Assembly (NCBI GenBank): GCA_025558095.1
Contig: JAIVFI010000008.1
Location: 310,001 to 374,000 of the forward strand
DNA from: Hyaloraphidium curvatum SAG 235-1
Lineage: Eukaryota; Fungi; Monoblepharomycota
DNA: 64,000 nt
Direction: 5' to 3'
Below are positions 4,496 through 49,645 of this stretch, one piece after another (within the stretch, counting starts at the first letter, position 1; each line of letters starts with the position of its first letter). A program made the translations under genes and the position numbers. Under the pieces are notes generated by a model. It made no database searches and was not told the origin of the DNA. It saw only the letters and a program-made list of their open reading frames with translations.

Positions 4496-6076
4496 CTAGC
4501 TGCTCTCCATCAGGATGGTGAACTTGAATGCCAGCGGATCGAACGCCGCGTACAGGTCATCCAGCAAGTTTCGGTTGCCCGCCAGGATCGTCAGCAGCCC
4601 CTCCACCCGTTCCTGCAGCACGCCGCCGGGAAGCATCGCGGCCTTGAGCATGTCGAGCTTGGCAAACGTCCGCTCGTGCCGCCGATCGCGCGCCTTCTCC
4701 ATCCGCGCGCGGAGCTTCCGCACGCTCCGTGCCGCGCGCTCGCCGTGCGCAACGGCGGCCCGCGCGGCCGCGGCGTCGATCCCGTTGGCTCTGGCTTCCA
4801 GGCGCGCGAAAGCCGCGGCGATCTGCGCCAGCTCTTCCGACACGTCCACGGGCACATCGCCGAGGCGCTCGGCCAGCCGGCGCTTCAGCGCAGCCGTGTC
4901 CGCAAAAAAGTCCGCGGGCTCGAGCTCCAGTTCCCGTGCAAGCTGCACGGCCGACCGGTCCATGTACATGGCCGAGTTGCGCAGGACGACGATCGGGAAC
5001 GGCACCGAAAACAGGTCAAAGACGCCCTTGAGCTGACCCCAGTAAGCCAGCTCGGAACCGCCCCCCACGTAGGCGACGTTGGGCAGCAGGATCTCCTGGT
5101 ACAAGGGCCGCAGCCCGACGTTGGGCGAAAACCGCTCCGGGTGGGTCCGAGACAGCGTCCGCAGCTCGTCCCGCGAGAAGACCAGGCCGGTGCCTACAAC
5201 CTCGAAGTTGCCGTCGAAGCGCCGCTCCAGGCGGGTGCGCAGGTCGCCGTAGAGGTAGAAGAGGTTCGTCGGACGCGCGTGGATCTGCGGTCTGTAACCC
5301 AGCTTCTCCAGCCTGGCGTCCGCCGCGGTGATCGCTCGGTGTATCGCAGTGCCGTCGATCTCGCTCTCCACCACGGGGCGAAAGAAGGCCTTCAGGGCCG
5401 GCGAGTCGGCGTCGAGGGCAACCACGCCGAAGCGGCCGAAAAGCTCGTGTGCGAGCCGCCTGGTGGCTTGCGCGAGGCTGGACCCGAGCCCATACGTTGC
5501 GGTGATCCCCCGGAAGCGCGCGGGCAGGGAATCCAGGAGCTCGACGAGCGAGTCGTCGATGCGCATGCGGCCCGTTGCACCCCGCTGCTCCGGTTTCCAG
5601 CGGAAGGTCTTGCCCGCGAACGAAAAGTGGTCGATCTCGGCGAGATCATGGTCCTCGGTTGCCATGTAGAAAACCGGAACGAAGCAGCAGTCCGGGTGGG
5701 CTTCGCCGAGTTGGAAGGCGAGCTTCACGGTGCTGATGATTTTGTAGGCCCAAAAGAGAGGACCGGTCATAAGATTGAGCTGGTGGCCCGTGACAAGAGC
5801 GAAGCAGTTGGAGCGCGAAAGTCGCGCGATGTTCTCGGCAACTTCAGGGTGCACATCATCCCCGAGGTCTCCATACTGCCTCTGAAGTTCCGAAACGAGG
5901 ACGGCGCGCTGTTCCGGCGAGTAGGACGCGGCCTTGTCGCGTATTTGGTCCGCAAATGCGGGCAGGTCCGGGAAGCGCCCGTAGAACGGAGCGAGGCGCG
6001 GGCTGCGCGCGATGTAATCGATGCAGAGCGATGAGAAGGCATTCGTCGCGCCGTAATCCACGAGCTGTGTTCGCAT
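4496..6076 (-). CDS. bshC: bacillithiol biosynthesis cysteine-adding enzyme BshC
   Basis: Intronless, about 526 aa; motifs VTGHQLNLMTGPL, MATEDHDLAEI, FSPNVGLRPLYQEILLPNVAYVGGGSELAYW, coiled coil, LQER. The GHQLNLxTGP form resembles Bacteroidetes BshC. Confidence 0.93.
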   Translation of the reverse strand: MRTQLVDYGATNAFSSLCIDYIARSPRLAPFYGRFPDLPAFADQIRDKAASYSPEQRAVLVSELQRQYGDLGDDVHPEVAENIARLSRSNCFALVTGHQLNLMTGPLFWAYKIISTVKLAFQLGEAHPDCCFVPVFYMATEDHDLAEIDHFSFAGKTFRWKPEQRGATGRMRIDDSLVELLDSLPARFRGITATYGLGSSLAQATRRLAHELFGRFGVVALDADSPALKAFFRPVVESEIDGTAIHRAITAADARLEKLGYRPQIHARPTNLFYLYGDLRTRLERRFDGNFEVVGTGLVFSRDELRTLSRTHPERFSPNVGLRPLYQEILLPNVAYVGGGSELAYWGQLKGVFDLFSVPFPIVVLRNSAMYMDRSAVQLARELELEPADFFADTAALKRRLAERLGDVPVDVSEELAQIAAAFARLEARANGIDAAAARAAVAHGERAARSVRKLRARMEKARDRRHERTFAKLDMLKAAMLPGGVLQERVEGLLTILAGNRNLLDDLYAAFDPLAFKFTILMESS

Positions 6077-6223
6077 TCGACGCGTTCCCGGGCGGGTTCG
6101 GACTGGGCCGCGCCGCATGGCAGCAGGCGGCGCCGCCGCGGGGATCCGCGTCCCATCTGTATTCTCAAAGGCGGACCTGGCGTGCCGGAGCCGGCTCGCG
6201 AACGAGGCATTGCTCGGCGTCGG

Positions 6224-7998: not shown

Positions 7999-8160
7999 AT
8001 GCCCGCCTGTGCGGCTCAAACGGAGCCGAACAGCTCTCGCAGGCCATGCGTCGGCATCATTTGCCACGATTCGCGGGGCGGAAGCTCGAGAATCGCCTGC
8101 CAGCTCGCGGCGTCCCTCTCGCGTCGGGACGCAGTTCGAGTTCATCTGTTTACCCGGTCG
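7999..8160 (+). pseudogene. bshA: N-terminal fragment of BshA (GlcNAc-malate synthase, GT4 glycosyltransferase)
   Basis: VGIICHDSRGGSSRIACQLAASLSRRDAVRVHLFTRS matches the BshA N-terminal pattern IGIxCYPxxGGSGxVATELGxxLAxRGHEVHFIT; similarity stops abruptly after HLFTRS. Confidence 0.75.
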
Positions 8161-10822
8161 GCGGACAGGGGCGGCTCCCCGGTGCGCGCCGCCGGCTGCA
8201 GCGACGCCCGGCGGAACGGCTCGGCGGACCCCATGCGGAGGAGGCGGAGCGGAGGAGGCGGAGGGAGGGGGAATCAGATCTGTAACGCCCGCGGATACGA
8301 AAGCTCTACCCAGATCCCAATTCAACTGTTCATGTAGTCCTCGATTACACTATTCTCTTTCCGTATCTTCACGCCTCGTCCTTAAAATCGACCTAGAGGA
8401 CCGCGTCGCGCGATATACATGGCTTCTGCCGTCGGTCTGCGTCCCCATCCTTTGGTCTATATGAATAGCCCGCCAGACAGGGCGTCGATCTGCTCCTGCT
8501 CGTGGAACTGTGCTTTTCCGTCCCTATGTCGGCCTCCTGGCCTGATCTTGATGTGATCGGGTCTTTGACGATTCCGAGGCACTCTGATGGCAGACGTCGG
8601 TTGCTCCCAAACAACCCGCTGAAGCACAAACCACCCTCACGGGACAGCGACTCTTTGCTCGTCTGCAGCGCCAAGAAACTCAAGGCGCACTTTCCGAGCC
8701 CCTGCTGGACGACCTTTCGGCTATCGATCTCTTGTCACGCTCGCTCACAACTTTGCCTACCGCCTCCCCTCCCCGACCATTGTTTGTTCACCAACTCTGC
8801 TCGCGGGAACCCTGCTCTTCGACTTTCTTCGGCTAGGTGAGTTTTGATCGACGTCGGCAAGGGACGGAAAGTGCGCCAAGGGTATCGAGGCGCTCATACG
8901 GGTTCATGGTTACCCCGGAACTGGTCACCGTGAGTGGTGACCCGCTAAGGACTTCCCGTAGAAGTCCTAGGGAGTGATTGCCGGTAGAAAGCGTCGAGGA
9001 GCTCGGCGTATGATCACTCTACGACCACAAGGTAGTCCCATCGCGCTTGCCCCTCGCCAAACCGCCCGCAAACAGCCAAACCTCCGAACCCCTCACACGC
9101 GCTGCAGAGCACGGCGCGCCACGCTGTGCATCGGTTTTCATTCAGCTGGTGCATTTCTCGGCGCCTCCGCGGGTGATGGCGCCGGGATTCGGTCGCGAGG
9201 CGGTGCCGGAGACCGTTGGGCCCTCCCGCGGTCAGGTGCGATCGTCGGCGGCCGCAGGCCTTGCCGGCGGTGCTTGACCAAGCGACGCGGCTGCGCACAC
9301 CGCGGCGGCATCGCGCAGGCTCGTGGTGCCCGTCGATTGGTTTCTGGCGCGACGGTGGTCGACCCCGGGCAGATGCCAAGTCGGGCGCTGGCCGTCGGCG
9401 CGGCTCTCCCGTCGTTTTTTGCTCGGAGATTTCTTTTTTAGAGCCGCTCAGGAAGAATGTCGGCGTGGATTTGTCTTGGGCGCCTTCTTCCTGTGCCGCC
9501 GGATGGGGTGTGCGCCCAATGCCATTTGTCGCTGCCTGCGGAGCTTTGAGCGCCGCCGGTTCGACCCCCTGCCTGTGCGGCCTCGTCGCCGCCGGCGGGG
9601 GCTGGATGGCCGCGCTTGCGTTGCTGTTCTTGGCTGCGACGAGGTACCCTGTCGAGGGGACTCCGAGCCACCCTCTCTGGCGGCGGCGAGACGCTGGGGC
9701 CCGTGTTGCACTGCTTCTGCGGGACGTTTCTTTCCTTTTGGTACAAGTCGGCGTCTCCCGGGCACGATTCTGACGCGGCGCTGCGGAGCGCGGCTCCCGC
9801 GACGGCACGCCGAGGACCTCGATCGCATCCGGCAGAGCGCCCTCTACTCCCCTTCCGGTTGGCGTATATCTGCAGCAGAGTGCCCGTGAACCGCAAATGT
9901 GAGTGTCCGCGCCGCGATGCTCTCCGTGGCGTCGGCTGACTCGCTCGTCGTCGCTAGGAACCGCATCCGCCCCTTTCGCGATTCCTCTGCGTTGCGGCCC
10001 GCTGCTCATTCCTGGACCCATTTGGATACCCGGACCGTCGTCAAACCCGCGCCACCGCTGATCGGGCACACTGCCATTTCTTCCGTCCGTGCGCGAACGG
10101 GCAAACCCCGGCTAGGGGCAGCTCAGCGGCCGCGACGGCGGTGTCATCCGGTCCCCGTCTACTCGCTTCCTCTCTCGCTATTGCTCGCCATTGTAGCGAT
10201 GGAGTAGTTGGCTGGCTTGCTTCTCGGACACGGTAGCTGGACGGGTGACGTGGCGGGCGTCGCTCTCGCGCATGTGGCGGATCTTCTTCGTTTCGAATTC
10301 TAGGACGTTTTCTTTGTTTTGAGGGAGGATCTTTTGCCTCGGAAGCGGCTTGCATGTAGCTCGGACGCGCCTGTGGCGACCTGATGCTCGTGGGACCAGG
10401 ACGCCTCTTGCAAACAAGGTCAACAAAGGACTCCCCCCGTGTCGTCTTTCACGCACCAGACCTCCGGCGCCAGCAGTCGCGTAAGTTTCCGAGCTTTTTT
10501 GTCTTGATCTGCGACTGGCGCGGCCGGGCAGCGCCGCGGAGGGGGGGGGTTTGGCCTGGGGCGACCTCCATCTCGGGCACTTCATGCCCGGCCATCCGCG
10601 CCTGCCGCCGGCGGAGACCCGGTCTGGCCCGGTTCTGCGACCTTTGGGTCGCAAGCTGCGGTTTGCGGGGGCTCCCTCGGCCGCGGCGGTCCGTGCAGCC
10701 GGCGCTCGGGCCCGGCCGGCAGAACCTTTCGCCGGACTTTGCTCACGGCCGTTCCCGCGCCAGATCTCTGCGACCTCGTGCTCTTCACCGTGTTCTGATC
10801 TCATCTTTTCCGGATTCTGACC

Positions 10823-13800
10823 ATGGCCGGGGCCGCCGAGGCCGCAGTCGACCTGCCCGACCCGGGTGCTGTTCCGCCCGAGGACATCAGCGCGGCGCTT
10901 CAGGGGGCGCCGACGTCCGTCATCTTGGGCTTTTTCGACGAGATGTACGACAAGACGTCCGAGGCCGCGGCGCTGCGGCTCGAGATCTGCGAGCTCGTCG
11001 ACCCCGAAGACGGCACGTCGCCCCGCAGGGCCGTTCCCCGGGGGAAGGCAAGCAAGATGGACATCCATGCGCGCAAGACGGCTGAGGAGGAAGTGACCGC
11101 CAAGCGAGCGTCGGCCCTCCGCGACGGCGGCAAGTGCGACTACGAGGGCCTGTTCCAGACTTACTGCCGGGTCCGCGCCGCGGTTCTGGACAAGCGGGTG
11201 GCTCAGTACATTGCCCGAGAACGGAGAACCGAACGCAGGGTGCAGATTGAACTCGCGAGGCAGCTCAAGGCCGAGGCCCGGGACGCGAGGAGATCCACCA
11301 GGGTCGAGGATGTCGCCGCGGGCAAGGTGGAGCACCCTGAGCATCACCCGCGCCGCGTTAGCTACGATGCTTCGACCGCGGCTGTGGGTCTGTGCATGGC
11401 CCTAGGCGTGTTGCTCGGCTTTGCGGCGTTCTTGGATATCACGATGCAGTCAGTTGCCGGCATCGCCAAGGGAGTGGCCAAGGGAGCCTTCGAAGGGGTC
11501 GCCGCCGCTGCCAAGGGTCTTTGGACGGCTCTCGTTACCCGGCGAGTCGCCGCCGCTTTCCTGGCCGTCGTCGCGCTTCTGGTCGCCGTCTTTCTCGTCG
11601 GACACGGGAGCCCCGACTGCCGCTCGAGCGACTTCCCCGCCTTACCTGCGCGAATCTCTGGGTCGTTGCCGAACTCGACAAGATCTGTGCACCGCCTCGG
11701 AGCTCACGTCGCCCGGCCGTCCTCACCATCCGCATCGTTGCATGGGGACGCCAGCGGGGTGCGACTCGTTCGCCGCGTCGCTCCGACCCCTGCCAGCGGC
11801 CCGGGACCCGCGCACCCGGCGCAGCCTGTCGAAGTGCAAGGGGCCGGCGCCAAAGATGTCGCGCCGTCTGCGGCGCCGTCATCACGGTCTCGCCCGGCCC
11901 AACGCCTCGGGTCTCCTCGCGCGGCGCGCGCCGCCGAGAAGTTGCTGGGGCGTCACACCGCAGCCGGTGGGTTTTGATCGCTCCGGATCGCATGGAGCTC
12001 GCAGCATTGACGCTCCCCACTCGTCCGCTGGCGCAGACGTCGTTGCCATGTGCGATGCCGAGCTCGCCAGGCGCGCGCAGGCCGAGCTTGCCCGCACCCA
12101 GCTCCGCCACGCTGTCATTGCCTTCCAGCTCAGGGACCGCATGTGCGACCGTCCTGGCAAGCTCGACTACCTGACCGGTGAGCTGCCATGTGGGCCCTTC
12201 GGTGCCATCTCTGACATGCCGCCTCTCTTTGTTCAGATTCCGAATGGGGAACGTTCGTCGGCGCCGCGCTCACCTGGCGCCTCAAGATGTCGGGCCCCTG
12301 GCGTCCGGCCTCCGCGGCGCCCTCCGCCGCCGTCGCCGATGCTACCGCACACGACCACCAGTGTGGTGTGATGGAGACGCCTCCGGCCTCGTGGACACCC
12401 CCCGTCAGGCCGGCCTCGGGCGCCGCGCTCATCCCGGCTCCGTCGTTGACCATCCACCCTCCCTCCGAGCCGGACGCCTCCGCCGCCGAACCCGCACCGC
12501 GCGCTGCCGATGCCGGGCTTGCCGCAGGGCCCGGGCCACTGGCTGCCGACGCTGTTGCGGCCAAGGTCGTCGCCGGAGCTGTCGACAATGCGCCCGCGCC
12601 CTGGACCCCAGCCTCTCGACCAGCTCCCCGACCTCCCTCCCCCACCCCCGCCGTTTCTGCGGTCGTGGCGGCAGGCCCAGAGCGCCGCGACGGAGACGAC
12701 GACCCCCCGACGCCCCTCACCCGGCCGTCGTCGTCTGCTTGGCGAGAGGGCGGAAGCCCCGCAGTCGCGTCGGAGGCGGCGCCGCCCAGCGGACCTCCTC
12801 TTCATGACGCGGGCGCGCGCTCTCTGCCTGTTGCGGGTGGCGCCGACGACGAGCCCGCTCCCCGGGTCCCTTGGAATGGACCGCTCTCGCGGTTCACCTT
12901 GGCCGGCCCGTGGACCGCCGCCGAGGCGGGCGAGGTCGACGAGCCGGAGGTGCTCTTCATTCTGCACCTCCCGTCCGACGTTGTGGCTGGGCACAACGCC
13001 TCGCGCGGGGTTGAGATCTCGATGCGCGCCTCGGATACGGTGTCTGATCTCCAGGTTCGTCGCGATCCATTCCTGTCGAGGCGCAAGCAGTTGACGCCCT
13101 TCCTACGCCCATTCCCGATCGCCACAGGTCCTCGTCGCAGACCGCATCGGCTGCCGTGTCTCTGCCGTCGACCTCTTTTCCGACCACCATCGGCGCAGGC
13201 GACTTTGCCCCGCAGCGTCGCTGGGCCAGTGCGGGATCCAGGCCGGCAGCTCCGTCTTTGCCCGCCGGCTTCGCAAGTTCACCCTATTCGTCTCCTCCTT
13301 CCCCATCACCCTCAGCGACGGCCTGCACTCGCTGAACAAGACCCTGACGGTCCGCGTGGGCTCCGACTTGCGGATCTCGGCGCTCAAGGTGGGCCAAATT
13401 CTCACCATGGCACCCGGCTGTCTTGCTGACCTCCCAATCCGCGCGCAGAAATCCGTCGCAGCCCGCCTCGGCGTCCCCAAGACGTCCTTCTACCTACGCA
13501 CACGGAGCGGCCTCGTCCTGGAGAAGGGCGGGCAGGTCGGGGACGAGCAGGTCGGGGACCTGCTCTGGAACGAGGCCACTCTCTTGGCCACCGTCCGCCT
13601 ACCCGGCGGGGCCAAGAACGCGACTTCGAGCGGAGGAAGGCGGGGGAGGGGAGGCAGGGGCGGTGGTCGGGGTGGGAGGGGCGGCCAGGTGCCCAAGACG
13701 CCCAAGCGGGTTCGGTCGGAGGACGAGGACGAGGGCGACGACAAGGAGAGCGACCCGGATCCGGAGGTGACGACTGGCGGCAGGGGGGTGGGCACGGAAC

Positions 13801-16800
13801 GGACCTCGCGCAGGGCGGGGTTGCGGAACGCCAATGCTGGTGCCGCGCCCGGCCCCTCGGTCTCGCCCGCGCACTCCACCCCGGCCGCGGCTCCGTCTCC
13901 CTCCGAGCCCGCTTCCGGCGCAGCGGCACCCACAGCTGCAGCACCACCTCCCTCGGCCCCCGCCGCCGGCAAGCCCCCCCCGCGCGGCCCTCGCGTCGAG
14001 CTGCCGGCCATGGACACCCACGAGGGCACGACGGCGCGGGCAGGCGGCAAGGGCGGCAAGAAGAAGGCCGGCGGCGGCCTCACCGGCACGCTGACGGAAG
14101 GCGAGGTGCAGACCATCGGCGGCAAGCACAGCGGCGGCAAGACCGCGACCAACAAGGAGATCTGGCCCGTGGCGATGAAGCTGCACGGCGGCGCATCGTA
14201 CCGCCTGCAGATCGACGACCACCTCGCCCGGCGGCGCATTCCCTTCAACCGGATCTGTTTCTACGTCGACGCGTCAGTGATCCTGCATTCCATCCTCGGC
14301 TCGGATTACGAGGCCAAGGCGCGGCAGGCCCTGGCGCCGCTCCTCTTTGGGCGTGCGGACTCAATGACCCTGCCGCCGGCTGACGAAACCCTCCCCTGGG
14401 TGGAGGACAGCCTGGGGGAGCTCGCGCGCGCGTTCGTGGACAAGCTTAAGCGGCTGCTCAGGGCGACGCCGGCATCGCGCGCCCGCGGCGACACCGTTGT
14501 GGTCTACTTCGAGACCGGGGCGCCAAAGCCGTCCGCGCAGGGAACACAGGCCCGCGCGGGCAAGCACCCGATCGCGTTGCCCGGGGCAGCGGACGCGGAG
14601 CCGTGGCAGCTGGTGCCGGAGGTGTTCGACGGCCAGCAGCAGCAGCAGCAGCAGCAGCAAGGAGGCGCGTTCTACGCCCTGCGGAAGCAGGTGCACGAGG
14701 CCGAGAAGCGCGGGACGGCCAACTCGGAGAGCTTCAACGGCGCCCTCAAGGGCTTCCTCAAGGTCGCGGGCAAGCCGGGCGCCGACGGCGTGCGCAAGGC
14801 CTTCGACCGGCCGGATGATCGTACAGGTGCCAATCGTGGGTCTCGCCGTGGACCACCCCCCGAAAACGGCTCCCGCTCACCGCCTCCATCTCATTCCATC
14901 CAGGTCTAGCAACGGCTCGCGCCGGCCACGTTGCAAGCTCCGCTCGCCTCGGGCCGGGCCTCATGCTCGTCCTCTCGCGCCTCGTCCGCGACCGCCTCCA
15001 GGCTGCACACGCCATGTTCGGCGCGACGGATGTTCAGCTCGTGGTGGCCGAGGCCGACGGCCATTTTGTCCGCGACGCGGAGCTGCGGTTGGATGCCCAC
15101 GGCCAGCAGGAGCTGCGGCTGGTCGTCACGAGCGACCGCGACCCCTTGTACATGGCCGTCCGCGAGGGCGCCATACACGGGATCGCCGATCTGTTCACCG
15201 ACGTCAAGGGGGCGACGCCGAGCCTGTTCCTGAAGCAGGATATCCTGGCGCACCTGGACGTGACCGCGGAGGAGCTCAAGGCATCGGTGCTCGTGGCGGG
15301 AAGCCACAACACGACGAGCCACTTCATCGTGGGTGTCGTTGATTCGGAGCTTTTGCGATCAGGCTGAAGGGAACGGCGGCTCACTGTCCCTCCCCGCAGG
15401 GCGCCAAGCGGTTCCGGGACGTGCTGCGGGCGAACAAGGCGATCATTGACGCCGCGTGGCTCCAGGCGCGGGAAGCTGTTCCGGGGTCCAGCTGGATCCG
15501 CACGTGCCTGGACATGGTCGTGCAGAACAACCTCGTCACCCCCAAACCCCGCGATCTCATCGCGGCCGACAAGGAAGAGCTGGTCCGCATCTACCACGAG
15601 ACCGAGGGCAAGCGGGCGGACGGGACGCCGCAGCGCCGTCTCCGGCTTCCGCTCGACGTCGCGCCGTCGGCGCAGGCCATGTTTCCTCTCCTCGTGCCCC
15701 TGGCCGAGGTCTTTGCCATGGAACCACTCGCAGCGGACCACCGGAAGGCCTTGGAGGCCCGGCGGAACGAGCTACGGAACGATCTCCGGAAGTTTGACGA
15801 GCGCTACGAGCCAGGGGAGAAGCTCATAAAGGCGGACGCCAAGACGCGCGAGAACATGCAGAAGGAGCTCATCGACGTGCTCGAGAGGCTCGGGGAGCAG
15901 CCCGTTCCGGGCAGCATCGCCGGGACCCCGTCTCCGAGGCCCCGACGGCGACATCAGTACGTGAGCCTCAAGGTGGGGAGCGAACGGCGGCGCTTGATGA
16001 CCTCGAGCTCACGCACAACCGTCGCCAGGCCGCGCTCGCGCAGCCTTTGCCGGCCGATGCCGCGCCCGGTCCTTCCTCCCCGGCACCGGTGGACCCGCAG
16101 CAGCCGGCCGACCCTTCGGCCGGCGCATCGGCATCGGCCAGCGCGGGCCCGACTTCGGGATCGTCGTCGGGACCGGCGTCCAGTCAGGCCATGACTCCGG
16201 AGCGAGACGCCGCGGTCAAGGTCGCCATTAAGATGGGCGAGGGCATCCAGGCCGCGTTCGAGCGGCGGGCCAAGAACGAGGAAGAAAGGCGCGAGGTCGT
16301 CGGCAAGCATGCCTGGAACGCGGCCAAGGAGGAGCCCGACGGGGACGGCTACATCTTCCTTGTCGGCGGCACCGCGATCCGTTCGACCGCCACGCCGGGC
16401 GCCGCTAGGGACGCGGTGCGCGCGGCAGTCGCGGCGGAAGCCGCCTCCGGGTCTGCTGGCGGGAACTTGGGCGGAAATGCGGCGGCTGCTGCGGACGCAG
16501 GGGCCCCCAGAGGCACCGCAGCGGGAGCTGCCGCGCCGGTGCCCATGGAGGTCGACCCTCCCGCGACATCACCCTCCCCTGAACCGCCTCGGGACGCCGC
16601 GATGGAGGACGCCTTCGCCGCCGGCGCCGGAACTGCAGTGGGTGACGTGCCGATGGACGAGTCGGCGGCGGGTCCGGATCCGGACGACGACGACGACGAA
16701 GCCCCGGAGGACGACGAGACCAGGCGGAGGACGAGGCAGGCCAAGGGCAAGGGGAGGGCCGAACCGATGAACGACCCGCTGCCCACGACTGCGGATCCCC

Positions 16801-19800
16801 GGACCGCGACCACGGAGGCGTTAGGTGCAGGGGAACCCGAGGGCGATCGAGAGGGAGCACCGGAGCAGGGTCGTGGGGCCGAACGGCCGCGCCTGTTGGT
16901 CAGGCTGCGCAAAGTGGACGCCGAAGGCTTGCGCTGGGAGCACGTTCGCGGCGATCACGCGCCGGCGTCGGGCAACTTGCGGGGCGCAGGTCGCCAGGAT
17001 TCGGCTCCCGCGCCCGCGCCCAAGAAGCAGAAGCGCGGCCGCGGGAAGGCCGACGAGGGCTTCAAGCTGGATCCGAAGGACGCCAAGGCGGACGAGGCGG
17101 AGGAGGAGGAGGCCCAAGGCGCGCGCAAGGGCGGTGGTGCTGTCACGATCCCCGGCCCCGTCCTCGACCACCTGGTGCAGCCCTGGTCCGGGCCCGTGAA
17201 GGACTTCATCTGGGCGCAGGTGCGGCAGGGTAAGGGCAGGCCGTCGGACGCGGACATCGAGGACTTTATGCGGAAGCAGCTCGGTCTGATCGGCACGGAG
17301 AAGCAGGCCGAGGTCGAGCTCGCGGAGAGGCGCAAGTTCGGCGACTTCATGGCGCTGGCGTTCCGCACGCAGCAGAGGCTGCTCATGGCCGGGAACGCCG
17401 CTTTTCGGATCGTCTTGGACACGTATCTGCACTTGGACGAGGAGCAGCGGGCTGCGTGGTTCCCGGGAGTGCCTCCTTCTCTCAACTGCTCCGATCCGGA
17501 AGCCCTAATTGATAATACGTACGCGGCGGTCGCCACCGCGCTGAGGCTCGAGGGCGGCGGAGATCCAGCTCGATTGGGTTCGGGGATCCCCGAGATCCGC
17601 GCCTTCCTTAGGGAGCTGGGCAAGGAGCTGACGTGGATCGGCCTGCAACCGGACGAGGACCCAGTGCGGATCCGCAGCGGCTTTGAGGAGTGGCTGAAGC
17701 AGAAGAAGGCGGCAGCGAAGGTTGCCTACGCGAAGGACTTGGCGAAGAGCGGCAAGCCACCGCGCGCGCGCAACCCCCATCTGGAGCGGGCGGCGGAGAT
17801 GGAGGTCGGAACTCTGTGCCGCATTTTCCCGGACCTCGCGCGCGAGTACCTGGACCAGCCCATTTCGCCGGACCGGGAGGACGGAAGGAAGCGGCTGTTC
17901 CTGCAACGCAACATCCTCCGGCTGGCGCCGCTCAAATCCTGGAGTCCGCGCGGAGCGGATGGCCAGGACCGTGCGGACGAGATCCTCGGGCTGCCTGCCG
18001 AGCTGGCATTTGCGACGGACGAGGATGCGGGACCCGACCGCACCGAGATCCCGGCGCCGCAGCCCGTGGACCCCGACCTTCGGCACGAGTATCGGCAGGC
18101 GATGCGGGAAACCAGCATCGCAATGGGCAGCGATCGCCTCCTCATCGCGATGCAAGAGGCCGCCGGCAGGCAGCTGCGCGGCCTTGCCTTTGTTGATTTC
18201 GTGGAAACCAGGTTCCGCGTGCTCGCCCGAGAGCCTGGGCTGGCCTTCCACCGCGGCGGCGCCCTGGACGATCCCACCCGCCGCTTCGTGTACGGGGACC
18301 TGTCGGCGCCGGACTTTGACCCCTCGCTTCCCGTCACGCTGCTCTTTGGGAACTGCCCCAAGCTCGACGTGCTCCTCGGTTCCCGCCGCCACTTCCTCAA
18401 CCCGACCAACAAGCTCCTGTTCAACGTTCTCAACGTCGTCGCCCTGCACCGGCTGCAGAACGCCCTCGAGCGTGCCAAGGTGGGCTCCCCGTCGCTCGGA
18501 AGCACGCACACCCTCACCCGTGCTGACACATCGACGCAGCGCGGCGATCCCGGTCGGTACCCCGCCGAGGTCCTGGAGAAGGACATCAAGGCCATCAAGG
18601 CTGACATCAACATGATCAAGGAGACCGAACCCCTCAAGGACCCCGACGATGCTCACTGGGAAGCGGCGACCGCCGCGCGCTGCCGCGTTCTGGGCAACAT
18701 TGTGTTCGCGGACGTCAACAGGATGTGCCCGATGCTGTTTGTGGGTGGCGACAATTGCCGTAGCATTCCAAGCGCTCGACTGACGCCTTCGCGCAGAACG
18801 ACGGCGACGAGTGCTGCTGCTGCGATCTCCCCCTAATGCTCCGCGTCGGTCGGGACAAGGCCCCCGAGCTCACCAAGGACGAGGCTCGCCGCGCGATGGC
18901 GCTCCACCGCCGAATGCAGCTCGAGTTCCTGCGACACGAGCTCCGAGCCTTCCACCCTGCGTTGGTCGTGGGCCTCGGCGTCAACATGCGCAAGGTGCTC
19001 GACGCCGCCTCTGGCGACCGCGACGTCCCGACCACCCCGCTCCCCTTCTCCACGGGCGGCGTCGCCAGCCTGCGGCTGCAGCCCGTCACCAACGACGACC
19101 TCCTTCCCCCGACGGACTTCGAGGTCGCCATGGCCCCGCACCCGATATCGGGGGTCAAGCTCCCGTCGCACCTCGCGGATTCCATCACCGCCATCAACCT
19201 CATCCCGGACCCCTCCCTCGTGCCGGGCGACGCCGCCGTCGTCGGTCCTTCCTGGCGCGCCGTGGCAAACATCGACGAGGGTGCGCGCCTGGCGATCGAG
19301 CGCCTGCTCCCGAGGGTCTACCGCAACTTCCCGGACACGGACGCCTCCGGGACCCCTCTCATGGTCTCGCTCGCCGCCGCATCGCTGGCGATCTCGGACT
19401 CGTTCATCGAGCACGACACCATGCACCACTCCTACAAGCTTTTCCCCGGGGTTTTCGCGCAGATCCATTCCTCCCGTCTCGTCTCCACCCTCACGCGCCT
19501 CGCCCGCGACGGTCTCCGCCGCCTGGTATACAACAAGGCGCACGCCTACCTCTCCAAGGCGTTCGCGCCCGGGGTCCCGCGCGGGCTCATCAACGCCCTG
19601 GCGTACCGCCTCCGCTGCGTCCTCGTTCCGCCGAAGCGCGGCGGCGCGCGCGCGATCGCGGCCGAGGAAGAGGGAGACGAGGAAGCAGAGGAGATTGTGT
19701 TCGCCGGGGTGCGCCAGGCCGCGGGCGACGACGACGCGGACACTGCCGGGGCCGTGACCGACGAGACGCCCGCCGAGACCGTGCTTGACATCTACGCCCG

Positions 19801-22399
19801 CGCCACCATCCTGGTCGGCGAGGTGGAGGGCGACGTTGCCGGTCTTCGAGAGCGCTTCACCGCGGACCTGTCGGCAGAGAAGCGCGGGCCGATCGAGGCC
19901 GCCTTCGACCTGTTCCTGAACCTGCTCACGGTTGCGGACGGAGGTGTCCGCTCGGCCAAGCACAAGGACGACGTGCGCACCGAGGTCGGCTTGGGCACGA
20001 CCGAGCTTTCCAAGCTGACTCTGGTGGAGCAGCTGGTGATGGTCCGCCGCGGGGTCGTGGCGGGCGAGCTGCGCCAGAACGTTGTGCCACGGCTCCATGC
20101 CGGAGACCGCTTCCAGCCCGTGGACAACACGGCGTTCGGGCGCTGGATCTCTGCCTACATTGGACATTTGCATCGGCTGAAGGAGGGCGGCACCGACAAG
20201 GACGGGAGGCCCGTTCCCTTTGCCCTTGCCGACGTCGTTCGGGGCTGGGATGTGCCGCGCATCAAGGCCGTCCAGGATGCCCTCGACAAGCAGAACCAGG
20301 CCACAAAGATTGACACCGGCACTGCGCCCGGCCTCCCCGCGCTCATGAACAAGATGATCCCCGGCCTGGCCCGCGTCGTACGCGGTCCGGCGATGGACCG
20401 GGGGGACGCGCACGTGGACAGGTTCGAACCCTACAAGTCTAGCCACTTCCAGTCCAACGGCATAGAAACGCGGATACTCGTGACCAACCAGCGCCATCCG
20501 CACCGCTACAACCAACTCGGCGGCGTGCGGACCAAGACTGCGGTGGGTCATTTGGCGCAGCGGCAGCTGACTGCGAGCAGATGCTGACCACCGCTCGATC
20601 GTGGCAGGCGGGGGACCCGATCCTCGGCGACAACCCGCGGTGGCCCGTCGACTGCAGGGGCTGCAAGAAGGGCAAGTGCGATCGGCTGTACCCCGGCTGC
20701 TCGTAGGTGTCCCGCACGATCACCGACGCCGATATACCTGATCCCGAGTTGCTGACGCCCGCGATCAGCGACTGTGCCGCGGCCAACCGCGCGTGCGTGT
20801 ACGATCTGCCGACCTGCAAGCCCTGCGAGGCGGCAGAGCGGGATTGCGACGGATGCATGCCGACCTGCGGGTGCGTCTCCAGCTTTGACGTGCATGCCGG
20901 CGCCAGAGTCTCACACCATCCGGTGCCGCGCAGCCACTGCTCCGCGAGCTCGACGTCGTGCACGTGGTCCGTCGCGCAGCCAGAGCGATACGCGCAGGTG
21001 ACCAGCAACGCGTTCCGCCGCACCCTGCCCGAACTTGCCGGGCATCGGCACATCAAGGCCGCGACCACGGCAACGGTGCCGGCGGCGGACAACGAGGCCG
21101 CGAGCGCGACCGCCGGCATCCCTCCTGCTCCTCCACCCACTCCTCCCTCTCCTCCCGCCCCGCCCGGGCCGCCGGCCTGCGGCTCGACCCCGATCTCCAG
21201 CCGCTGCTCCTCGTCGTGCTGCCATGTTCGCGCCGGAGCCGCCGGCACGCATGACCACGCGCGAATCGTGGTACTGGAAGGACAGCTGTGCTGTCGCCCT
21301 CCATCGGGCCCCGGCGGCCGCCGGTGTCAGAAGCTGCAGACGGACGGCAAGGACGTGCCGTACTTCTTCAGGCACTCGACGACCGTCGAGGCTGCGGACA
21401 GCCTCGCCCTCGAGTCGATCCTGGTCGCGGTCGACCCCGGCACCGGCGGCCACACGATCAGCGTCACCGTTCACTTCCGCGGCGAGGGCGGCCAGCTGGA
21501 GCAGCTGACGGTGCACCGCAAGTTCGAGCCTCTCTCGTCCGCCGGATACCGTGCACGCGACGAGGAGGCGAGGTCGGCGGCCTGGTGGGAGGCCCATGGG
21601 GCGATGTCGCAGGGGTTGCGCGGGATCTCGAGGTCGCCGTACCCCATGGACGGCGTCATGGCCGGTGCGCGAGCTGTCGTCCGCGTTTCCGAGCGCCGCA
21701 GTGCTGACCTCTTTCCCGTGCCCAGGTGCCGCCTTCCTCCGCAATGCCGGCCCCCTCCTCGACCACGCGCAGAGCCGCAAAGCCCAGCTGGCCAAGGCCT
21801 ACCGGTTCCGCGCCTTCCAGGCCCGCAGCAACGCCATCGTCAACTGGATCACGGAGGCCTGCGAGGCCCTGTGGCGGCGCAAGACGTATGTCGAGACCTA
21901 CAACGCCGCCGTCCGGCAGGCCCAGGGCGCGCACGGTGGCCGCAAGCCGACCGCGGAGGAGCTCAGGATCACGGAGCGCGCGGCGCGCGAGGCCGCGGAG
22001 CAGGCCGTCGACCGCATCGCCGCCGTGCCCAACCCCATTGTTCTCTGCGGCGCTGGCCAGGGCTCGTCGTCGAAGATGCCGTACCGCGGCGGCATCGCCG
22101 AGCTGCTCTCGCGCCACTTCCTCGTGGTGATGCTCGGCGAGCACAACACGTCGCAGCGGTGTCCCACGTGCCTCTCGGAACTCAAGGCGTACCCGCTGCG
22201 CAAGGGCGACGTCGAGCACAAGGTCTGCCCGTCCTGTGCCGGCCGCTCGGACAAGCACGGCTTCAAGGACAAGCTCGAAGTCAACAAGAATCGGTCGGCG
22301 ACGTTGTGCCTCATTCGAGTGTTCCTGCACATCATTGCCACCGGCCAGCGGCCTGCCGCCTTCACCCACCCCGCTGCTTTGCGCGGAACTGCCGGATAA
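10823..22399 (+). CDS. giant multidomain Fanzor1-like protein (about 3,575 aa): TM region - 2x ubiquitin-like - FEN1/XPG-like nuclease - UDG-like - 2x Zn2Cys6 - RuvC/zinc finger
   Basis: Thirteen GT-AG introns join consecutive ORFs in frame: 11967-12036, 12178-12236, 13055-13127, 13389-13448, 14827-14903, 15329-15399, 15961-16028, 18480-18539, 18741-18796, 20543-20607, 20703-20768, 20871-20933, 21665-21725. The spliced length is 10,728 nt. RuvC-I VAVDPG (21433), RuvC-II GEHNTSQRCPTC (22139), KVCPSC zinc finger, and the C-terminal RPAAF typical of Fanzor1. Confidence 0.82.
14635..14660 (+). repeat. (CAG)n microsatellite encoding poly-Gln within the giant Fanzor gene
   Basis: Run of CAG codons giving QQQQQQQQQ. 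Confidence 0.85.
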
Positions 22400-22530
22400 A
22401 CCGACCCGGCGCGAACCTGAATGGGTGAGTGTAGGATTTCTCTCGGGCAGGGCTTTCTCGGGCCCTGAGCATTCACGGAGGAGTTGACCAACCTCTCTCC
22501 CCTTTTCAAAAGTCTGCGGATAGTGGCGGG
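22400..22530 (+). ncRNA. candidate Fanzor omegaRNA (scaffold plus flank-derived guide)
   Basis: Directly follows the Fanzor stop; nested stems GTGAGTGT(22425-32)/GCATTCAC(22469-76) and CAGGGCTT(22448-55)/GGGCCCTG(22460-67). Position matches known Fanzor/TnpB omegaRNAs; boundaries inferred. Confidence 0.5.
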
Positions 22531-23256
22531 GACTCGGATGTTGTGACCGCTGTATCTCGACATCATGCCTTTCTGGCGAGGGATGTCTTTTGCCTGGATT
22601 CCTGCCCGACGGTCTTGCGCAACTTTGTTCCTGTCGAACGCTTTGCTCGTCGACGCCGATCCACCAATGCGGGCTGCAAAGTTGTCGGCCATGTTTCCAA
22701 TTTCAGGCCCGTCAAAAATCCGCTGATGGTCGCCGAGGTTTTCCAGATTCTCCGCCTGCAGTCGACCTCCGTCACGCTGAAGCTCATCGGAGATGGCCCG
22801 TTGAAGGGCGAACTGACTATGCGTCTGCAGGAACGCTGTTTGTCGGATGGCGTGCTCAGTGTCGACAGTGTGTCGGGAAGCGTGCACAGTGTCGGCTTCA
22901 CCCCGGACGTGGCGGCGGCTCTTCATGAGTGCGACGTCCTCTTTGTTTCCAGCCAAATGGAGGCATTCAGTCTAGCTGCATTGGAAGCCATGGCAGCCGG
23001 AGTGGCGGTAGTAGCTCCCAGGGTCGGCGGCATTCCGGAGCTCTTGACCGACAACGAAACGGGAGTTCTTTACGAGCCTGGGGACGTCGCGGGAGCCGCG
23101 GCAGCCTTGAAGGCGGTCCTGGGTGACGACGCCTTCCGAAGAAGGCTCACGGAGCGGGCATTTGAGGTGGCAAAAGGGTACGACGTGAATGCTGGCGTCG
23201 CTGCCTACGAGCGGCTCTATCTCCGCCTGCTCAGCAGAGGTCGAACAACGATTTGA
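22531..23256 (+). pseudogene. bshA: C-terminal portion of BshA (GT4 glycosyltransferase)
   Basis: SDVVTAVS, NFV, the BshA signature GHVSNFRPVKN, LIGDGP, and SQMEAFSLAALEAMAAGVAVVAPRVGGIPE. No start codon or N-terminal domain; the HVHYAIPH region was not found. Confidence 0.88.
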
Positions 23257-23467
23257 CACCGGGTACACGCGCAGCTATGTATCTTTCGCCAAAGTCAAAT
23301 CCCACCGAGATGTGGGTCATCGTCCGTCCTCTCCGTCCGATGCGTCGGATCGTGGAACTGCGTCTCGGAGACGAAGCCGCCCGCGATGGTTCGCGCCTTT
23401 CCATCAGGCGTTGCAGAACACACAGTCCGGCTCGAGTTCACGCAGCCGGTCATTGCACCACAGCCAG
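23231..23467 (-). pseudogene. bshB1: decayed, internally deleted second copy of the bshB1 3' half
   Basis: Clear nucleotide similarity to 27475-27950 (e.g. TCAGCAGAGGTCGA...GATTTGACACCGGGTA, GAGATGTGGGTC, GTCCGTCCTCTCCGTCCG, GGCGTTGCAGA, CAGTCCGGCT) with two large deletions and small indels. Confidence 0.88.
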
Positions 23468-27410: not shown

Positions 27411-27474
27411 GTTGGCTTGCTGTATAGATCGTCGCGCTGCTTTACCTCCACTAGATTATGTTGGCGCATCCTGC

Positions 27475-28206
27475 TCAGCAGAGGTCGAGCAATGATTTGA
27501 CACCGGGTATACGCGCAGCTATATACCCCTCTCCAAAATCAAAGCCCGCCTGATGGCCAAACTCACGGGCGCGAGCTTCGACGAACCTGATGAACGCGGG
27601 GGTCGAGATGTGGGTCTGCGGTCCGTCCTCTCCGTCCGGTGCGTCGGGATCATGGAACTGCGTGCGGTAGGCGCGAATGGCATCCAACTTCCGGTCCCAG
27701 AACTCGCTGATGTCCACGACAAACGTCGGTATGAGCAGCCGGTCCTGGATGTAGCTGTAAACGTTCTTTGGTCGCCATGGGGCCTGTGCTTCGCCATCGG
27801 GGCCCAATGTCGCCACCTTGACCAATCCGCTGAGAAAAACGGACTCGGAGACGAGCTGCGCCGCCCGCGAGTGGTCCGGATGCCTTTCCACCGGGGCGTT
27901 GCAGAGGATGCAGTCCGGCTGGAACTCCCGCAAAGCTTGCACAGCCGCCAGCTGCGATGCCTCGTCGTTCCGGAAGAAGCCGTCGCGCAGACCCAAGTTC
28001 CGCCGCACGCTGAGCCCCAGGATTCGGGACGCGTCCTCCGCTTCCCGGGCTCGCGTCTCGGCTGTGCCCCGCGTGCCCAGCTCGCCGCGCGTGAGGTCGA
28101 CGACGCCGACCCTCCGACCCCGCGCAATCTCGCTCAGGATCGTCCCTCCGCAATTGAGCTCCGCATCATCGGGATGCGCTGCAATGACGAGCAGGTCCAG
28201 CTTCAT
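27475..28206 (-). CDS. bshB1: bacillithiol biosynthesis deacetylase BshB1 (PIG-L/LmbE family)
   Basis: Intronless, 243 aa; MKLDLLVIAAHPDDAEL, VDLTRGELGTRG, RHPDH, LSGL, YIQD, QF, THISTP, EG. Resembles Bacteroidetes BshB1. Confidence 0.93.
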   Translation of the reverse strand: MKLDLLVIAAHPDDAELNCGGTILSEIARGRRVGVVDLTRGELGTRGTAETRAREAEDASRILGLSVRRNLGLRDGFFRNDEASQLAAVQALREFQPDCILCNAPVERHPDHSRAAQLVSESVFLSGLVKVATLGPDGEAQAPWRPKNVYSYIQDRLLIPTFVVDISEFWDRKLDAIRAYRTQFHDPDAPDGEDGPQTHISTPAFIRFVEARAREFGHQAGFDFGEGYIAARIPGVKSLLDLC

Positions 28207-35689: not shown

Positions 35690-38600
35690 ATGCCGAAGCT
35701 TCTGGAGTTCCAGAAGGGCATGATTCGGGAGCTTCTGGACGCTGTTCCCGATGGCCATGCGGAGGACGACCCGGACGTGTACGACCAGGCGCTGGCGCGC
35801 GCCATGGACGGGCCACAGATGAATCAGGACGGAGAGGCCAAAGGCGACGGCCTCCTCGTCACCGGAAAAGGCCTCGGACTGCAGCGTGTGCTGCTGACGT
35901 TCATTCGGATCTACATGGATCCCCGCTTCCTCGTGCTGCTGATCAACACGCCGGAAAGGGAGGCGGACAGCCTGCGGGAGGCACTCCTGCAGCGGGAAGA
36001 CCTTGTCGCGGAGGCCCAGCGCGGTGAGGAGGAAGGGGACGGACTTGCCATCTCGGTCAAGGAGCTGAAAGTTATCAACAACGAGACGCTGTCCTCGGCG
36101 CGCCGGGATCTCTACCAGCGCGGGGGCGTCCTTGCCATTACCTCGAGGATCCTCATAACGGACATGCTGAACGATCAGATCCCTCTCGAGCTCGTTTCCG
36201 GTATCCTCGTGAACCACGCCCACCGCGTGCACGAAACGTCGACCGAAGCCTTCATTCTCAGGCTTTTCCGGCAGAAGAACAAGGTCGGATTCATAAAGGC
36301 CTTTTCGGACTGCCCGGAGGATTTCGTTCGAGGCATGTGGAAGCTAGAAAAGTCCATGAAGGCCCTGTATTTGCGCCGCGTCTTCCTGCATCCGAGGTTC
36401 GAAGTTCGCATCATGGAGGAACTGGAAAGCAAGGGCGAACCCAAGGTTTACGATATCCGGGTGCCGCTCACGGACACCGTGAAGCAGATCCAGGCGGCCC
36501 TCATCGAATGCGTGGACGCTTGCCTCAAGGAACTTGCCCGGAACAACAGCTGGGTGCGTCAGCGGTCAATTTAATCTTTCCTTTCGGTTTCTCTTATTGT
36601 CACGACGCAGCTCGACGCCGAAGAAATGACGGTCGACAACTTTCTCTTCCGGTCTTTCGACAAGGCGATCAAGCTCCAGCTCGAACCTTTCTGGCACAAG
36701 TTGAGCTCAAAGACGAAGCAGCTCGTCGAAGACGTGAAGACCCTGCGCCGCTTGCTCGATTTCTTGCTGGACTACGACTGCGTTTCGTTCAACCGCCTCC
36801 TGGAGGTCATTCTTACTTCGCAGGCGGTCGCGGCACCTAATCGGGGTGGCGCACCGGAGCCACAGTCGCCGTGGCTGCTGTTGGACGCGGCAAACACCAT
36901 TTTCGCGCTTGCAAAGAAGCGCGTTTACGTGCGTCGCGACCCGAACGACGAGGATGAGGACGAACATGAGCTGGAGATGATGCAAGTTCGGCGGACCTGG
37001 GTTCCCCACGCGGACATGCTTCTGCCGCCTCATGTGGATCCCGTGCTCGAAGTGCAGCCCAAGTGGCAGGCTCTCGCCTCGCTTTTGAAGGACATTGAGA
37101 AGGAGCGCCGGAAGATGGTCGCCAAGGGCTCAAGTCCCGGGCCCGTGCTGATCATGTGCGAAGGGGACAGGACGATGCGCCAGCTGAGGGAATATCTGAG
37201 TGGACCGACTGCGCCAAAGATCGGTACCACGTCTCGCGAGGCATCTCCAGCGGACTCGCACGACAGCGATGAGGCCGTGGAAGTTCTTGGCAGCAGCGAT
37301 GACTCGAGCGAGCATTCGGACAGCGTGGATGAACCCATCAATTTGGACAGCGACGAGGAAGAGCGGCCGAAAAAGAAGCGAAGCAAGCCCAGGCGCAACG
37401 CACGAAAGAGCAAGGCGAAGCGGGGCAAAGATGGGGAAAAAGGCGAAAGGACTCGAACGAAGCTCAAGATCGATGCGGAGGAGGACCGGGCCGGGAAAGC
37501 GATGCTGGGACGGATGCTCGGAAACTACTTTAGCTGGAAAGGGAGCGTGACAACCGTGAGCAGGAACTTGTTTGCGGGCAGCACTGGCACTGCCCAGAAT
37601 TCGGCTGCCGCCGCCGGCGGGGGAAACCCGGCGCCAAATGGAGTTGGGGGAGTTGGGGGAGGACGAGGTGGTGATTCGGGACCGAGCAGAGGAGGCCGGC
37701 CCCCGCCGAACAAGCGGCGCAGAGTCCGCGGAGCTTCAAAGGCCGCTGCCAACACGCACATACCCGTCAGCAACCCAGTTTCTGCGATCGGTGGCGCGAA
37801 CCGTGCGGGCCGGCCCAACGCTTTGCCGTTGACTTTTGAAGAAGAGGCTGCCGAGGTGGCTCGATTGTGAGTGGGTTCGATCGCTGTTCTGGTCGTTCTC
37901 ACCTGCCGTTTTGGTAGCCTCGACGCGCAGAACGGAATACCCGGCGAGAACGGCGAGGGCGAGAATGATCGAGCCGACAGAGATGCGGCGCAGGACGTGG
38001 CCGACCTGCTCGATGCAATGAAGGGGAACGAAGCCGCCCCGCTCGTGGTGGCCGAGAACGACATTGGCGTCCTGTCGACGTCCGCTATGGTCGTCATTCG
38101 CCCCTACGGTTCCAGCAGCGCAAGTGCCATTTCCTCCGCGGAAACAGCCGGGGACGAGGACTCGCGAATCTTGGAGGACTTGAAGCCGCAGTGGATCGTG
38201 CTGTACGATCCCGACCTCGCCTTCGTTAGGCGCATCGAACTGTATAAGGCTGCGAACGAGGAAGTCAAGGACCTGAAGGTTTATTTCATGGTCTACGAGG
38301 ACTCTGTCGAGGAGCAGAGGTATCTGAGCATGGTGCGGCGCGAGAAGGACTCTTTCGAGAAGCTCATCCGAGAGAAGAGCAACATGGCGATCCCGATCGA
38401 CCAGGACGGGAGGGTCGTCGCCGAGCAGGCCGAGTTCCTGCGGGACCTTTCTACCCGCGTCGCCGGTGGCGGTCGCACCAGCCTGCATGCGAACCGGCCG
38501 CCGCTCATCATCGTGGACGTGCGCGAGCTGCGATCGTCTCTCCCGGCCATGCTGCACGCCAAAGGCATCGAGCTCGTCGTCAAAACGCTGGAAGTGGGCG

Positions 38601-39234
38601 ACTACGTGCTCAGCACTTCGATCTGCGTGGAGCGCAAGAGCGTTTCGGATCTCGTGCAGAGCTTCCGTTCGGGTCGGCTGTACACTCAGGTGGAGGCCAT
38701 GAGCACGCATTATCGGATGCCGGTACTGCTGATCGAGTTCGACATGAACAAGGCCTTCTCGCTGCAGGTACGTTGCGCTTGGAACCGGTTAGTCGATAGG
38801 AGTTGATCCGTGCGCCGATTCAGACCGTCAACGAAGTTAGGACCGAGATCAACTTCAACGACATCCAGTCCAAGCTTGTGCTCTTGCTGCTCGCCTTCCC
38901 CACGCTTCGGATCCTGTGGTCATCGTCCCCGCATGCAACCGCCGACATGTTTGAGGACCTCAAGCGGCAGCAGGAGGAGCCGGATCCCGACAAGGCGCAG
39001 GCGATCGGCGTGGAAAATCTGGACAGCGCCCAGTCGATGTACGCACCGACACCGCAGGAACTCCTCCGATCCCTGCCCGGCATCAATCAGAGGAACGCGA
39101 GGCACGTCATGAACCACGTGGAGAGCATCTACGAGCTGAGCAAGCTGACGCAGGATGAGCTGGCTCCTTTAGTCGGACCGGAGAATGCTAGGCTGCTGCA
39201 CGTGTTTCTCCACACCAATGTTCAGAAAGCGTGA
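35690..39234 (+). CDS. ERCC4: DNA repair endonuclease XPF (Rad1/Rad16/ERCC4)
   Basis: Helicase-like N-terminus (GKGLGL, TSRILITDML, GFIKAFSD), ERCC4 nuclease motif GDYVLS...ERKSVSDL, C-terminal HhH LRSLPGI; three introns. Confidence 0.95.
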
Positions 39235-39280: not shown

Positions 39281-42052
<2,772 letters not shown>

Positions 42053-49517: not shown

Positions 49518-49645
49518 GCCGTCACTGGAGCAAGGAGGAACTCTGAATCGAGCATCTTGATGTCGCATTTCTGACTTTGCAACACGATCGTTGTTTGCGC
49601 GGTGATCGTTGCGTGTCCCCTCCGTGTCCCAATCTCCGTTCATTC

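Follow-up and report, generated by a model that had tools for sequence, protein, structure and literature searches.

A Fanzor1 gene fused to an XPG-like nuclease domain in a multi-copy element of Hyaloraphidium curvatum

The DNA analyzed here is a window of 64,000 nucleotides (nt) from the genome of the freshwater fungus Hyaloraphidium curvatum (G000). All coordinates are positions in this window, the element with its parts, its flanking duplications and the two bshA pieces lies on the plus strand, and C31, C14, C8 and similar labels denote contigs of the same genome. A coding gene with 14 exons and 13 introns extends from 10823 to 22399 and encodes a protein of 3,579 amino acids (aa). Sequence comparisons support an architecture consisting of two ubiquitin-like (UBL) domains, a FEN1/XPG-like nuclease, a putative UDG-like domain, two Zn2Cys6 clusters and a predicted Fanzor1 nuclease. 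The gene is the only one carried by a 13.4-kb element (9067–22501) that is almost certainly mobile. On balance we favor the view that a copy-and-paste DNA transposon has this as its single gene, and that the protein combines Fanzor1 with an N-terminal FEN1/Exo1-type nuclease and accessory modules.

Gene model and transcripts

Splicing out 13 GT-AG introns of 56 to 77 nt leaves a 10,740-nt frame, rebuilt from splice signals, whose sole stop codon is terminal. A first-pass annotation of this DNA, made from the letters alone, had proposed one frame running through 13 short introns; the giant single frame stands, and the length it gave as about 3,575 aa is corrected by the computed 3,579 aa. Introns 1–5 lie at 11967–12036, 12178–12236, 13055–13127, 13389–13448 and 14827–14903, introns 6–10 at 15329–15399, 15973–16028, 18480–18539, 18741–18796 and 20543–20607, and introns 11–13 at 20703–20768, 20871–20933 and 21665–21725. 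Ten of the 13 are required by a frame change or a stop; introns 4, 8 and 12 keep the frame and contain no stop.

As the annotation had suggested, junctions were checked against RNA, using contigs of one public run and positions 15800–21799 (introns 1–6 lie outside this stretch). The run is RNA, as its spliced joints show, and all 30 bins of the stretch were covered. Its contigs skip introns 7, 8, 11, 12 and 13 exactly, connecting exons 7–8, 8–9 and 11–14. The joint between exons 10 and 11 was found only in a variant belonging to the near-identical C31 copy of the element: it sits 4 nt upstream of the modeled junction, where a 3-nt deletion in C31 makes an upstream AG, and the assembled RNA uses this cryptic AG, which the window copy lacks. 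The joint of intron 9 is absent from the listed joints, RNA depth dips at 19600–19799, and the whole transcript is spanned by no single read or contig of the run. The intron 8 joint derives from the window copy, from which it shows 0 differences in 505 nt (14 for C31), and the base differences listed in the RNA match the C31 copy in 40 cases out of 40; both copies are therefore transcribed.

Two paralogs deposited for H. curvatum, of 2,449 aa and 2,987 aa, are each modeled as a single protein. They are 34% identical to each other and collinear with our gene model from the ubiquitin-like region to the end of RuvC, and the 2,449-aa protein is the top match of the gene's last exon. One deposited model breaks at the positions of introns 3–13 (P0098, 11 of 11) and the other at those of introns 5–13 (P0001, nine of nine); for introns 1 and 2 the evidence consists of sequence signals and conservation in the C31 copy. 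Values of dN/dS against the C31 copy are 0.28 overall, 0.08 in the XPG domain and 0.11 in RuvC, and the spliced reading frame is under purifying selection. The fusion is very probably one protein.

Domain composition and relatives

Domain searches and folds were run on single exons or on the deposited paralog proteins. The C-terminal part is a Fanzor1 RuvC with zinc finger (21424–22399), in which the motifs quoted by the annotation for its Fanzor1/TnpB-type RuvC were located: VAVDPG at 21424, LGEHNTSQRCPTC at 22133, CPSC at 22223 and RPAAF at 22349. The profile alignment proposed with that claim was run and agrees with it, a 31-sequence family profile matching PpFz1 (E = 1e-11), GtFz1 (E = 7e-4) and TnpB (E = 0.017). 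Fanzor1 is defined by a DPG signature and a rearranged RuvC-II Glu (PMC10711439, PMC13565253), and both are present. The C-terminal motif D-x(125–275)-TS-xx-C4 was also found, with D at aa 3279, TSQRC at about aa 3497, CPTC and CPSC. The catalytic triad reads D-E-N, with D in DPG, the rearranged E six residues ahead of the finger and N in third place. Note that the canonical RuvC-III Asp (RD motif) is absent in this subfamily and replaced by Asn, as in 6 of 63 surveyed matches. GtFz1 cuts with D-E-N, and SpuFz1 becomes more active with the same change (PMC11423790); membership in Fanzor1 therefore stands despite the missing Asp. A reading of the nuclease as dead through the D to N change was rejected, since GtFz1 is active with N. 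The putative REC/WED region (19200–20542) was placed by alignment and family profile. It has a TDG-like motif, of the type described for WED (PMC10711439), as SNG at 20447–20464; the paralogs have it as SNG/TNG variants, which the profile aligns to the TDG of PpFz1 with a weak score.

The FEN1/Exo1/XPG-type 5′ nuclease core (14259–15411) was identified by family profile and acidic motifs. With a profile built from eight family members, matches to human Exo1 (E = 1e-5) and FEN-1 (E = 2e-5) were obtained, which bear out the FEN1/XPG-like nuclease of the annotation, and a profile built without fungal proteins recovers all three in a three-sequence search (E = 4e-8, 1e-5 and 0.01). Acidic residues are retained in VDAS, FETG, EAD and SDRD, and at the seven positions with conserved acidic residues (FEN1 numbering), six are acidic in three of three paralogs and the H3TH Asp is His. 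The top seven structural matches of a low-confidence model of the region are all 5′ nucleases (Z = 6.0–7.0); Foldseek gave no match at E ≤ 0.001 for two low-confidence models, and the Fanzor model was uninformative.

The other modules were assigned from alignments, profiles and a language-model match. The N-terminal region (aa 1–666, 10823–12949) contains two hydrophobic stretches (about aa 184–208 and 235–264) and a Pro/Ala-rich linker, and gave no family match. It is followed by a tandem ubiquitin-like pair (aa 667–842, 12950–13610), recognized by alignment and by the match of paralog P0098 to ISG15 (E = 0.013). The second of these domains terminates in RLPGG (13596–13610), with RLRGG and RLLGG in the paralogs; this end is a possible site for a host deubiquitinase, which would free the nuclease part from the hydrophobic N-terminus. 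A helical region of about 390 aa (17151–18329) is conserved in an alignment of three paralogs. Next comes a putative UDG-superfamily-like domain (18342–19153) with an NCPK motif, a Cys cluster and an HP motif, of which HP and NCP are retained in three paralogs. Its first match in ESM Atlas is PF03167 (score 0.90), with 10 of the 10 best named matches concordant, and no Pfam or PDB sequence match was obtained; the annotation's UDG-like assignment agrees with the former and finds no counterpart in the latter. Two Zn2Cys6 clusters (20650–20967), split by introns 11 and 12, lie between WED and RuvC-I. Both paralogs exceed the PF00172 cut-off with two stretches each, and the Zn2Cys6 profile matches HAP1, LAC9 and PPR1; in the first cluster of the window copy the second spacer has 4 residues, not 6. 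The ubiquitin-like and Zn2Cys6 modules had likewise been named in the annotation and were recovered. Pfam and NCBIfam searches of single exons gave the zinc finger only, and neither one protein nor three paralogs, when searched against PDB sequences, brought up XPG, UDG or Fanzor; deeper family profiles were needed.

Uninterrupted XPG–Fanzor open reading frames (ORFs) occur in four other eukaryotic samples (P0008, P0017, P0033 and P0043). They are 1,069–1,648 aa long, one being cut by the contig start, and have the XPG motifs at the N-terminal and Fanzor at the C-terminal side. At foreign loci L050 and L051, the Fanzor frame has an XPG frame some 50 nt upstream of it, with an intron-like stretch between them. 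The H3TH Asp is retained in several foreign relatives, and UDG, UBL and Zn2Cys6 modules were seen in none of the foreign XPG–Fanzor relatives. The family core is XPG plus Fanzor, the UBL, UDG and Zn2Cys6 modules being seen only in this subfamily and two close paralogs. A metagenome scan for relatives found nothing, and word-based homolog searches gave only the two paralogs, nothing or one relative, with length limits that make the blanks uninformative.

The element, its copies and its right end

The element is bounded by comparison with the C31 copy (94.8% identity over 13.5 kb), from which its 5′ non-coding part (9067–10822) differs by 5.6% substitutions and many indels. The C31 copy is intact: none of the 13 intron boundaries is lost, and with the junctions of the model its frame is open over 3,581 aa. 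The annotation had proposed a search for other copies, and this also found divergent full-length copies on C14 and elsewhere on C8 and 5′-truncated copies on C17, C15 and C5, the right ends of all copies being intact. One truncated copy is 99.4% identical to C31, from which it follows that the family was recently mobile. In the C5 copy, 255 bp of the RuvC region are duplicated exactly and in tandem (L017, G000:C5, about 741726–742233). Introns are retained in all copies, including truncated ones and strongly divergent paralogs, and the intron positions shared with the latter argue for a DNA template. No terminal inverted repeats were seen on inspection of the element ends, and family searches of the exons found no DDE, HUH, recombinase, reverse transcriptase (RT) or helicase domain in the element.

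Exact target duplications of 10–17 bp were found at eight insertions. G directly precedes the duplication proper at every one of the eight, and in the five insertions of this clade the target is purine-AG. The element terminates in pyrimidine-AG in seven of the eight, the target (A)G overlapping the terminal AG of the element. Pyrimidines make up 75–100% of the first 20 nt behind the left duplication, again in seven of eight; this C/T filler exceeds 150 nt in C31. A second, distant family on C2, C11, C13 and C30, together with a mini-copy on C6, has the same terminal motif. It is about 8.9 kb long (L025, G000:C2:944751–953690) with the same duplications and filler signature, and its C2 copy has XPG-like motifs by eye. 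The C6 mini-copy, of about 180 bp, consists of the right end alone.

A hairpin with a 5-bp stem and a 10-nt A-rich loop lies over the stop codon (22391–22410). Its conservation extends over four subfamilies and to one foreign locus, and there is covariation (95% of cells paired, double changes at two pairs), though with few independent changes. The hairpin is a candidate for the first stem of a guide RNA scaffold; whole-region folding z-scores at the right end are unremarkable for the window copy. Downstream of it we predict a terminal spliceosomal intron of 88 nt (22425–22512), which spans the presumed guide-RNA region. Its signals are the donor GTGAGT at 22425, a branch-like TTGAC at 22484, a C/T tract and an AG at 22511–22512, at the target junction. 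The motif CTGAATG-N-GTGAGT has 11 matches in the genome, all at ends of Fanzor elements, and 0 in a reversed control. Of 6 foreign loci tested, 4 have a strict donor no more than 90 nt from the stop, against about 0.35 expected. Three further foreign loci have near-consensus donors and an intron-like stretch of 50–60 nt closing at CAG, and locus L052 has no terminal intron-like signals. Judging from these signals, the terminal intron is probably spliced. Foreign relatives L049, L050 and L051 close their terminal intron-like stretch with the same TTTACAG followed by TA.

The window copy interrupts a host bshA-like glycosyltransferase gene, split into a 5′ piece (7999–8160, profile positions 3–38) and a 3′ piece (22513–23256, profile positions 144–374), both found by profile match; profile positions 39–143 are missing. 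By analogy with other copies, the right flank at 22513–22529 is the probable right target-site duplication and the presumed guide sequence. The probable decayed left duplication (8158–8174) is identical to it at 14 of 17 positions. This match is the only such one in the window and joins the two bshA pieces in frame; the chance of a 14/17 match is about 0.7% with the start fixed at AG and 6% with a free start. Between the left duplication and the shared left end lies extra sequence (8175–9066, no strand assigned) with repeats elsewhere: 8283–9034, just left of the element, is a separate repeat present on at least four other contigs, and the 122 bp at 8153–8274 are 99% identical to G000:C8:205611–205733 on the opposite strand. 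Bacillithiol biosynthesis genes lie beside the split bshA at 4496–6118 and 27475–28206 (both minus strand); bshC and bshB1 exceed NCBIfam cut-offs, and these genes, in the genome of a fungus, have the look of a bacterial cluster gained by horizontal transfer. A short internal duplication connects 23226–23363 (bshA 3′ region) and 27470–27663 (bshB1 region). Ordinary host genes follow at 37871–38806, 41723–44515, 49609–50544 and 52265–53233 (ERCC4-domain nuclease, Sir2, Snf7 and LanC-like).

Proposed mechanism, alternatives and known systems

What was observed of the mechanism that we propose is the polarity, the duplications, the filler, the overlap at AG and the retention of introns; the remaining steps would be as follows. 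A staggered break would be opened at the target, and the target's bottom-strand 3′ end would pair with the right end of the element via AG. DNA-templated synthesis would proceed leftwards from the right end, an early stop giving 5′-truncated copies, and untemplated purines added to that strand would appear as the C/T filler. The XPG domain would trim 5′ flaps in invasion and joining, and fill-in would create the target duplication. RuvC, guided by an RNA composed of the right end plus flank, would make the break or help to make it; it probably also cuts the empty allele, favoring homing, as in other OMEGA systems (PMC13565253). The terminal intron would set the fate of the transcript, mRNA or guide RNA. 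For this we see two options at about even odds: splicing may fuse the hairpin exon directly to the flank, giving a spliced guide, or it may take out part of the scaffold in an IStron-like switch.

Several points weigh against this interpretation. The H3TH aspartate of the XPG core is replaced by His (GSHN), the structure models have low confidence (pLDDT 50 and 38), and RNA guidance and all enzyme activities are what we infer from sequence. By eye, new targets are unlike the flanks of other copies, which leaves a guide-directed choice of new sites without support. Domain searches found no transposase in the element; given the conserved 390-aa helical region without assignment, it may encode a very divergent one. 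Helitron sequences and many reverse-transcriptase sequences are present in the genome and could act in trans, and CRe-1/2/3 of Chlamydomonas, which have a similar signature, were assigned to Helitron2 (PMC3627910). The cryptic AG at intron 10 of the C31 copy shifts the frame ahead of the zinc clusters and RuvC, and the best-covered transcript form of that copy may lack the nuclease. That the element stands for a new class of eukaryotic DNA transposon, with fused FEN1/XPG and Fanzor replacing the transposase, one-ended DNA-templated copying and a guide RNA made or silenced by splicing across the element–flank junction, is put forward tentatively.

The most serious competitor, though we consider it rather unlikely, is that the element is a non-autonomous passenger mobilized in trans by a Helitron-type (HUH) transposase, the fusion assisting by cutting or restorative homing. 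Three Helitron_like_N matches occur in the genome, and CRe-1/2/3 combine an intron-containing Fanzor1 with 5′ truncation, intact 3′ ends, 7–19-bp duplications and extra 5′ sequence (PMC3627910). Here, however, the terminal motif was found only at Fanzor-element ends, Helitron2-type terminal repeats are not apparent by eye, full-length copies have duplications where full-length CRe insertions do not, and the fused XPG domain recurs in unrelated hosts. Less probable again is a route that needs no dedicated chemistry, in which host double-strand-break repair (synthesis-dependent annealing plus end joining) captures the element at breaks some of which Fanzor makes, with XPG as an accessory. Filler, captured sequence and variable duplications are typical of repair-mediated insertion, and filler, captured 5′ sequence and variable duplication length are all seen here. 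Yet the fixed polarity, fixed right end and (A)G target rule in eight insertions point to specificity encoded by the element, and the XPG domain is its most conserved part (dN/dS 0.08).

We give very little weight to retrotransposition in trans by a target-primed LINE reverse transcriptase. LINE hallmarks include variable duplications, 5′ truncation and untemplated nucleotides, and these are found here in a genome with many RT sequences, but every copy keeps its introns, truncated and divergent ones included, and there is no poly(A) tail. It is just as improbable that the gene is a domesticated host effector, an RNA-guided editor or regulator. Expression, purifying selection and the DNA-repair-like and transcription-factor-like modules would suit such a role, but copies are dispersed with duplications and truncations, the window copy breaks a host gene, and no fixed orthologous locus was seen. 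The annotation's conception of a natural genome editor or regulator accordingly gives way to that of the sole gene of a multi-copy element. Nor do we expect the modules to be separate genes or transcripts joined by an artefact of intron calling, a view that could draw on the lack of a transcript-spanning read, on introns 1–6 and 9 having no RNA joint and on the dip in depth. A stop-free frame of 10.7 kb is present in two copies, spliced joints link most of the exons in the stretch compared (exons 10–11 via the C31 variant only), two independent deposited models are single proteins, and intron-free foreign ORFs have the same core.

In the searchable literature, subscription journals and Repbase lying outside its coverage, neither an XPG–Fanzor fusion nor a Fanzor with a spliceosomal intron at its right end was found described; the annotation, too, had known of no description of the fused architecture. 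“Fendons” (PMC11071296) were rejected as a prior description: the paper gives them a single sentence, and the one entry located in its supplement is a pox G5-like protein that stands alone. Already known are Fanzor1, Fanzors with introns and, at some Fanzor elements, long duplications (PMC3627910, PMC10530073). What appears new is an XPG–Fanzor core recurring in unrelated eukaryotes, and a predicted spliceosomal 5′ splice site after the stop codon with its 3′ AG at the element end. According to a 2026 review, Fanzor-bearing eukaryotic transposons are all Helitron, Crypton, IS607-like or DDE (PMC13565253); as tested, the present family fits none of these types, though it is expressed, under selection and recently mobile. 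It makes testable the origin of the long, variable target duplications noted at several Fanzor1 elements since 2013, and whether a TnpB-family nuclease can help to move its own element and not guard it alone. The element may exemplify a new mode of DNA self-copying. A conserved spliceosomal intron at the scaffold–guide junction, if true, would be the eukaryotic equivalent of the conflict in IStrons, and guide RNAs would be produced by a new route. The relatives that lack introns (about 1,200–1,650 aa), as putative fusions of an RNA-guided nuclease and a flap nuclease, may be of interest for templated editing.

Among known systems, DDE transposons with Fanzor (Mariner, IS4, Sola, MuDR) have terminal inverted repeats, a fixed short duplication and a DDE transposase, and non-LTR retrotransposons have RT, intron loss and a poly(A) or repeat tail; none of these features was found here. 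Replitron-1 of Chlamydomonas (PMC10288648) shares copy-and-paste movement, an orientation-specific RG target and variable duplications, whereas the HUH Rep and terminal direct repeats of Replitrons were not found. With FEN1/Exo1/XPG 5′ nucleases the protein shares acidic active-site motifs and an H3TH-like region, but here the domain is embedded in a transposon protein and the H3TH Asp is His. With Fanzor1 proteins (SpuFz1, GtFz1, PpFz1; PMC3627910, PMC10432273, PMC11423790) it has in common the DPG RuvC-I, the Glu before the C4 finger, a TDG-like WED and a C-terminal place beside the right end of the element; D-E-N is as in GtFz1, and the best structural relative is PpFz1. It differs in length (3,579 aa, against 633 aa for SPu-1-1p) and has fused XPG, UDG-like and UBL-pair modules and a Zn2Cys6 pair between WED and RuvC-I, in an element without inverted repeats and with a predicted intron over its right end.

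Helitron2-Fanzor1 CRe-1/2/3 and MCi-2 of Mucor (PMC3627910) resemble the element in 5′ truncation, intact 3′ ends, extra sequence at the 5′ junction, long variable duplications (7–19 bp and 11–12 bp) and the lack of inverted repeats, and CRe has introns too. In contrast to them, the present element shows no Helitron-type ends; its target is (A)G and not TTTT, its full-length copies have duplications, and it has C/T filler and a fused XPG domain. IStrons, which combine a group I intron with an IS605/IS607 TnpB (PMC10690162), likewise have an intron over the right-end guide-RNA region, and there as here splicing could compete with guide formation. TnpA was not found in the element, and only spliceosomal signals were seen over its last 88 nt, where no Rfam search was made. 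Unlike that of IStrons, the predicted intron described here is spliceosomal, 50–110 nt long, confined to the right end and eukaryotic.

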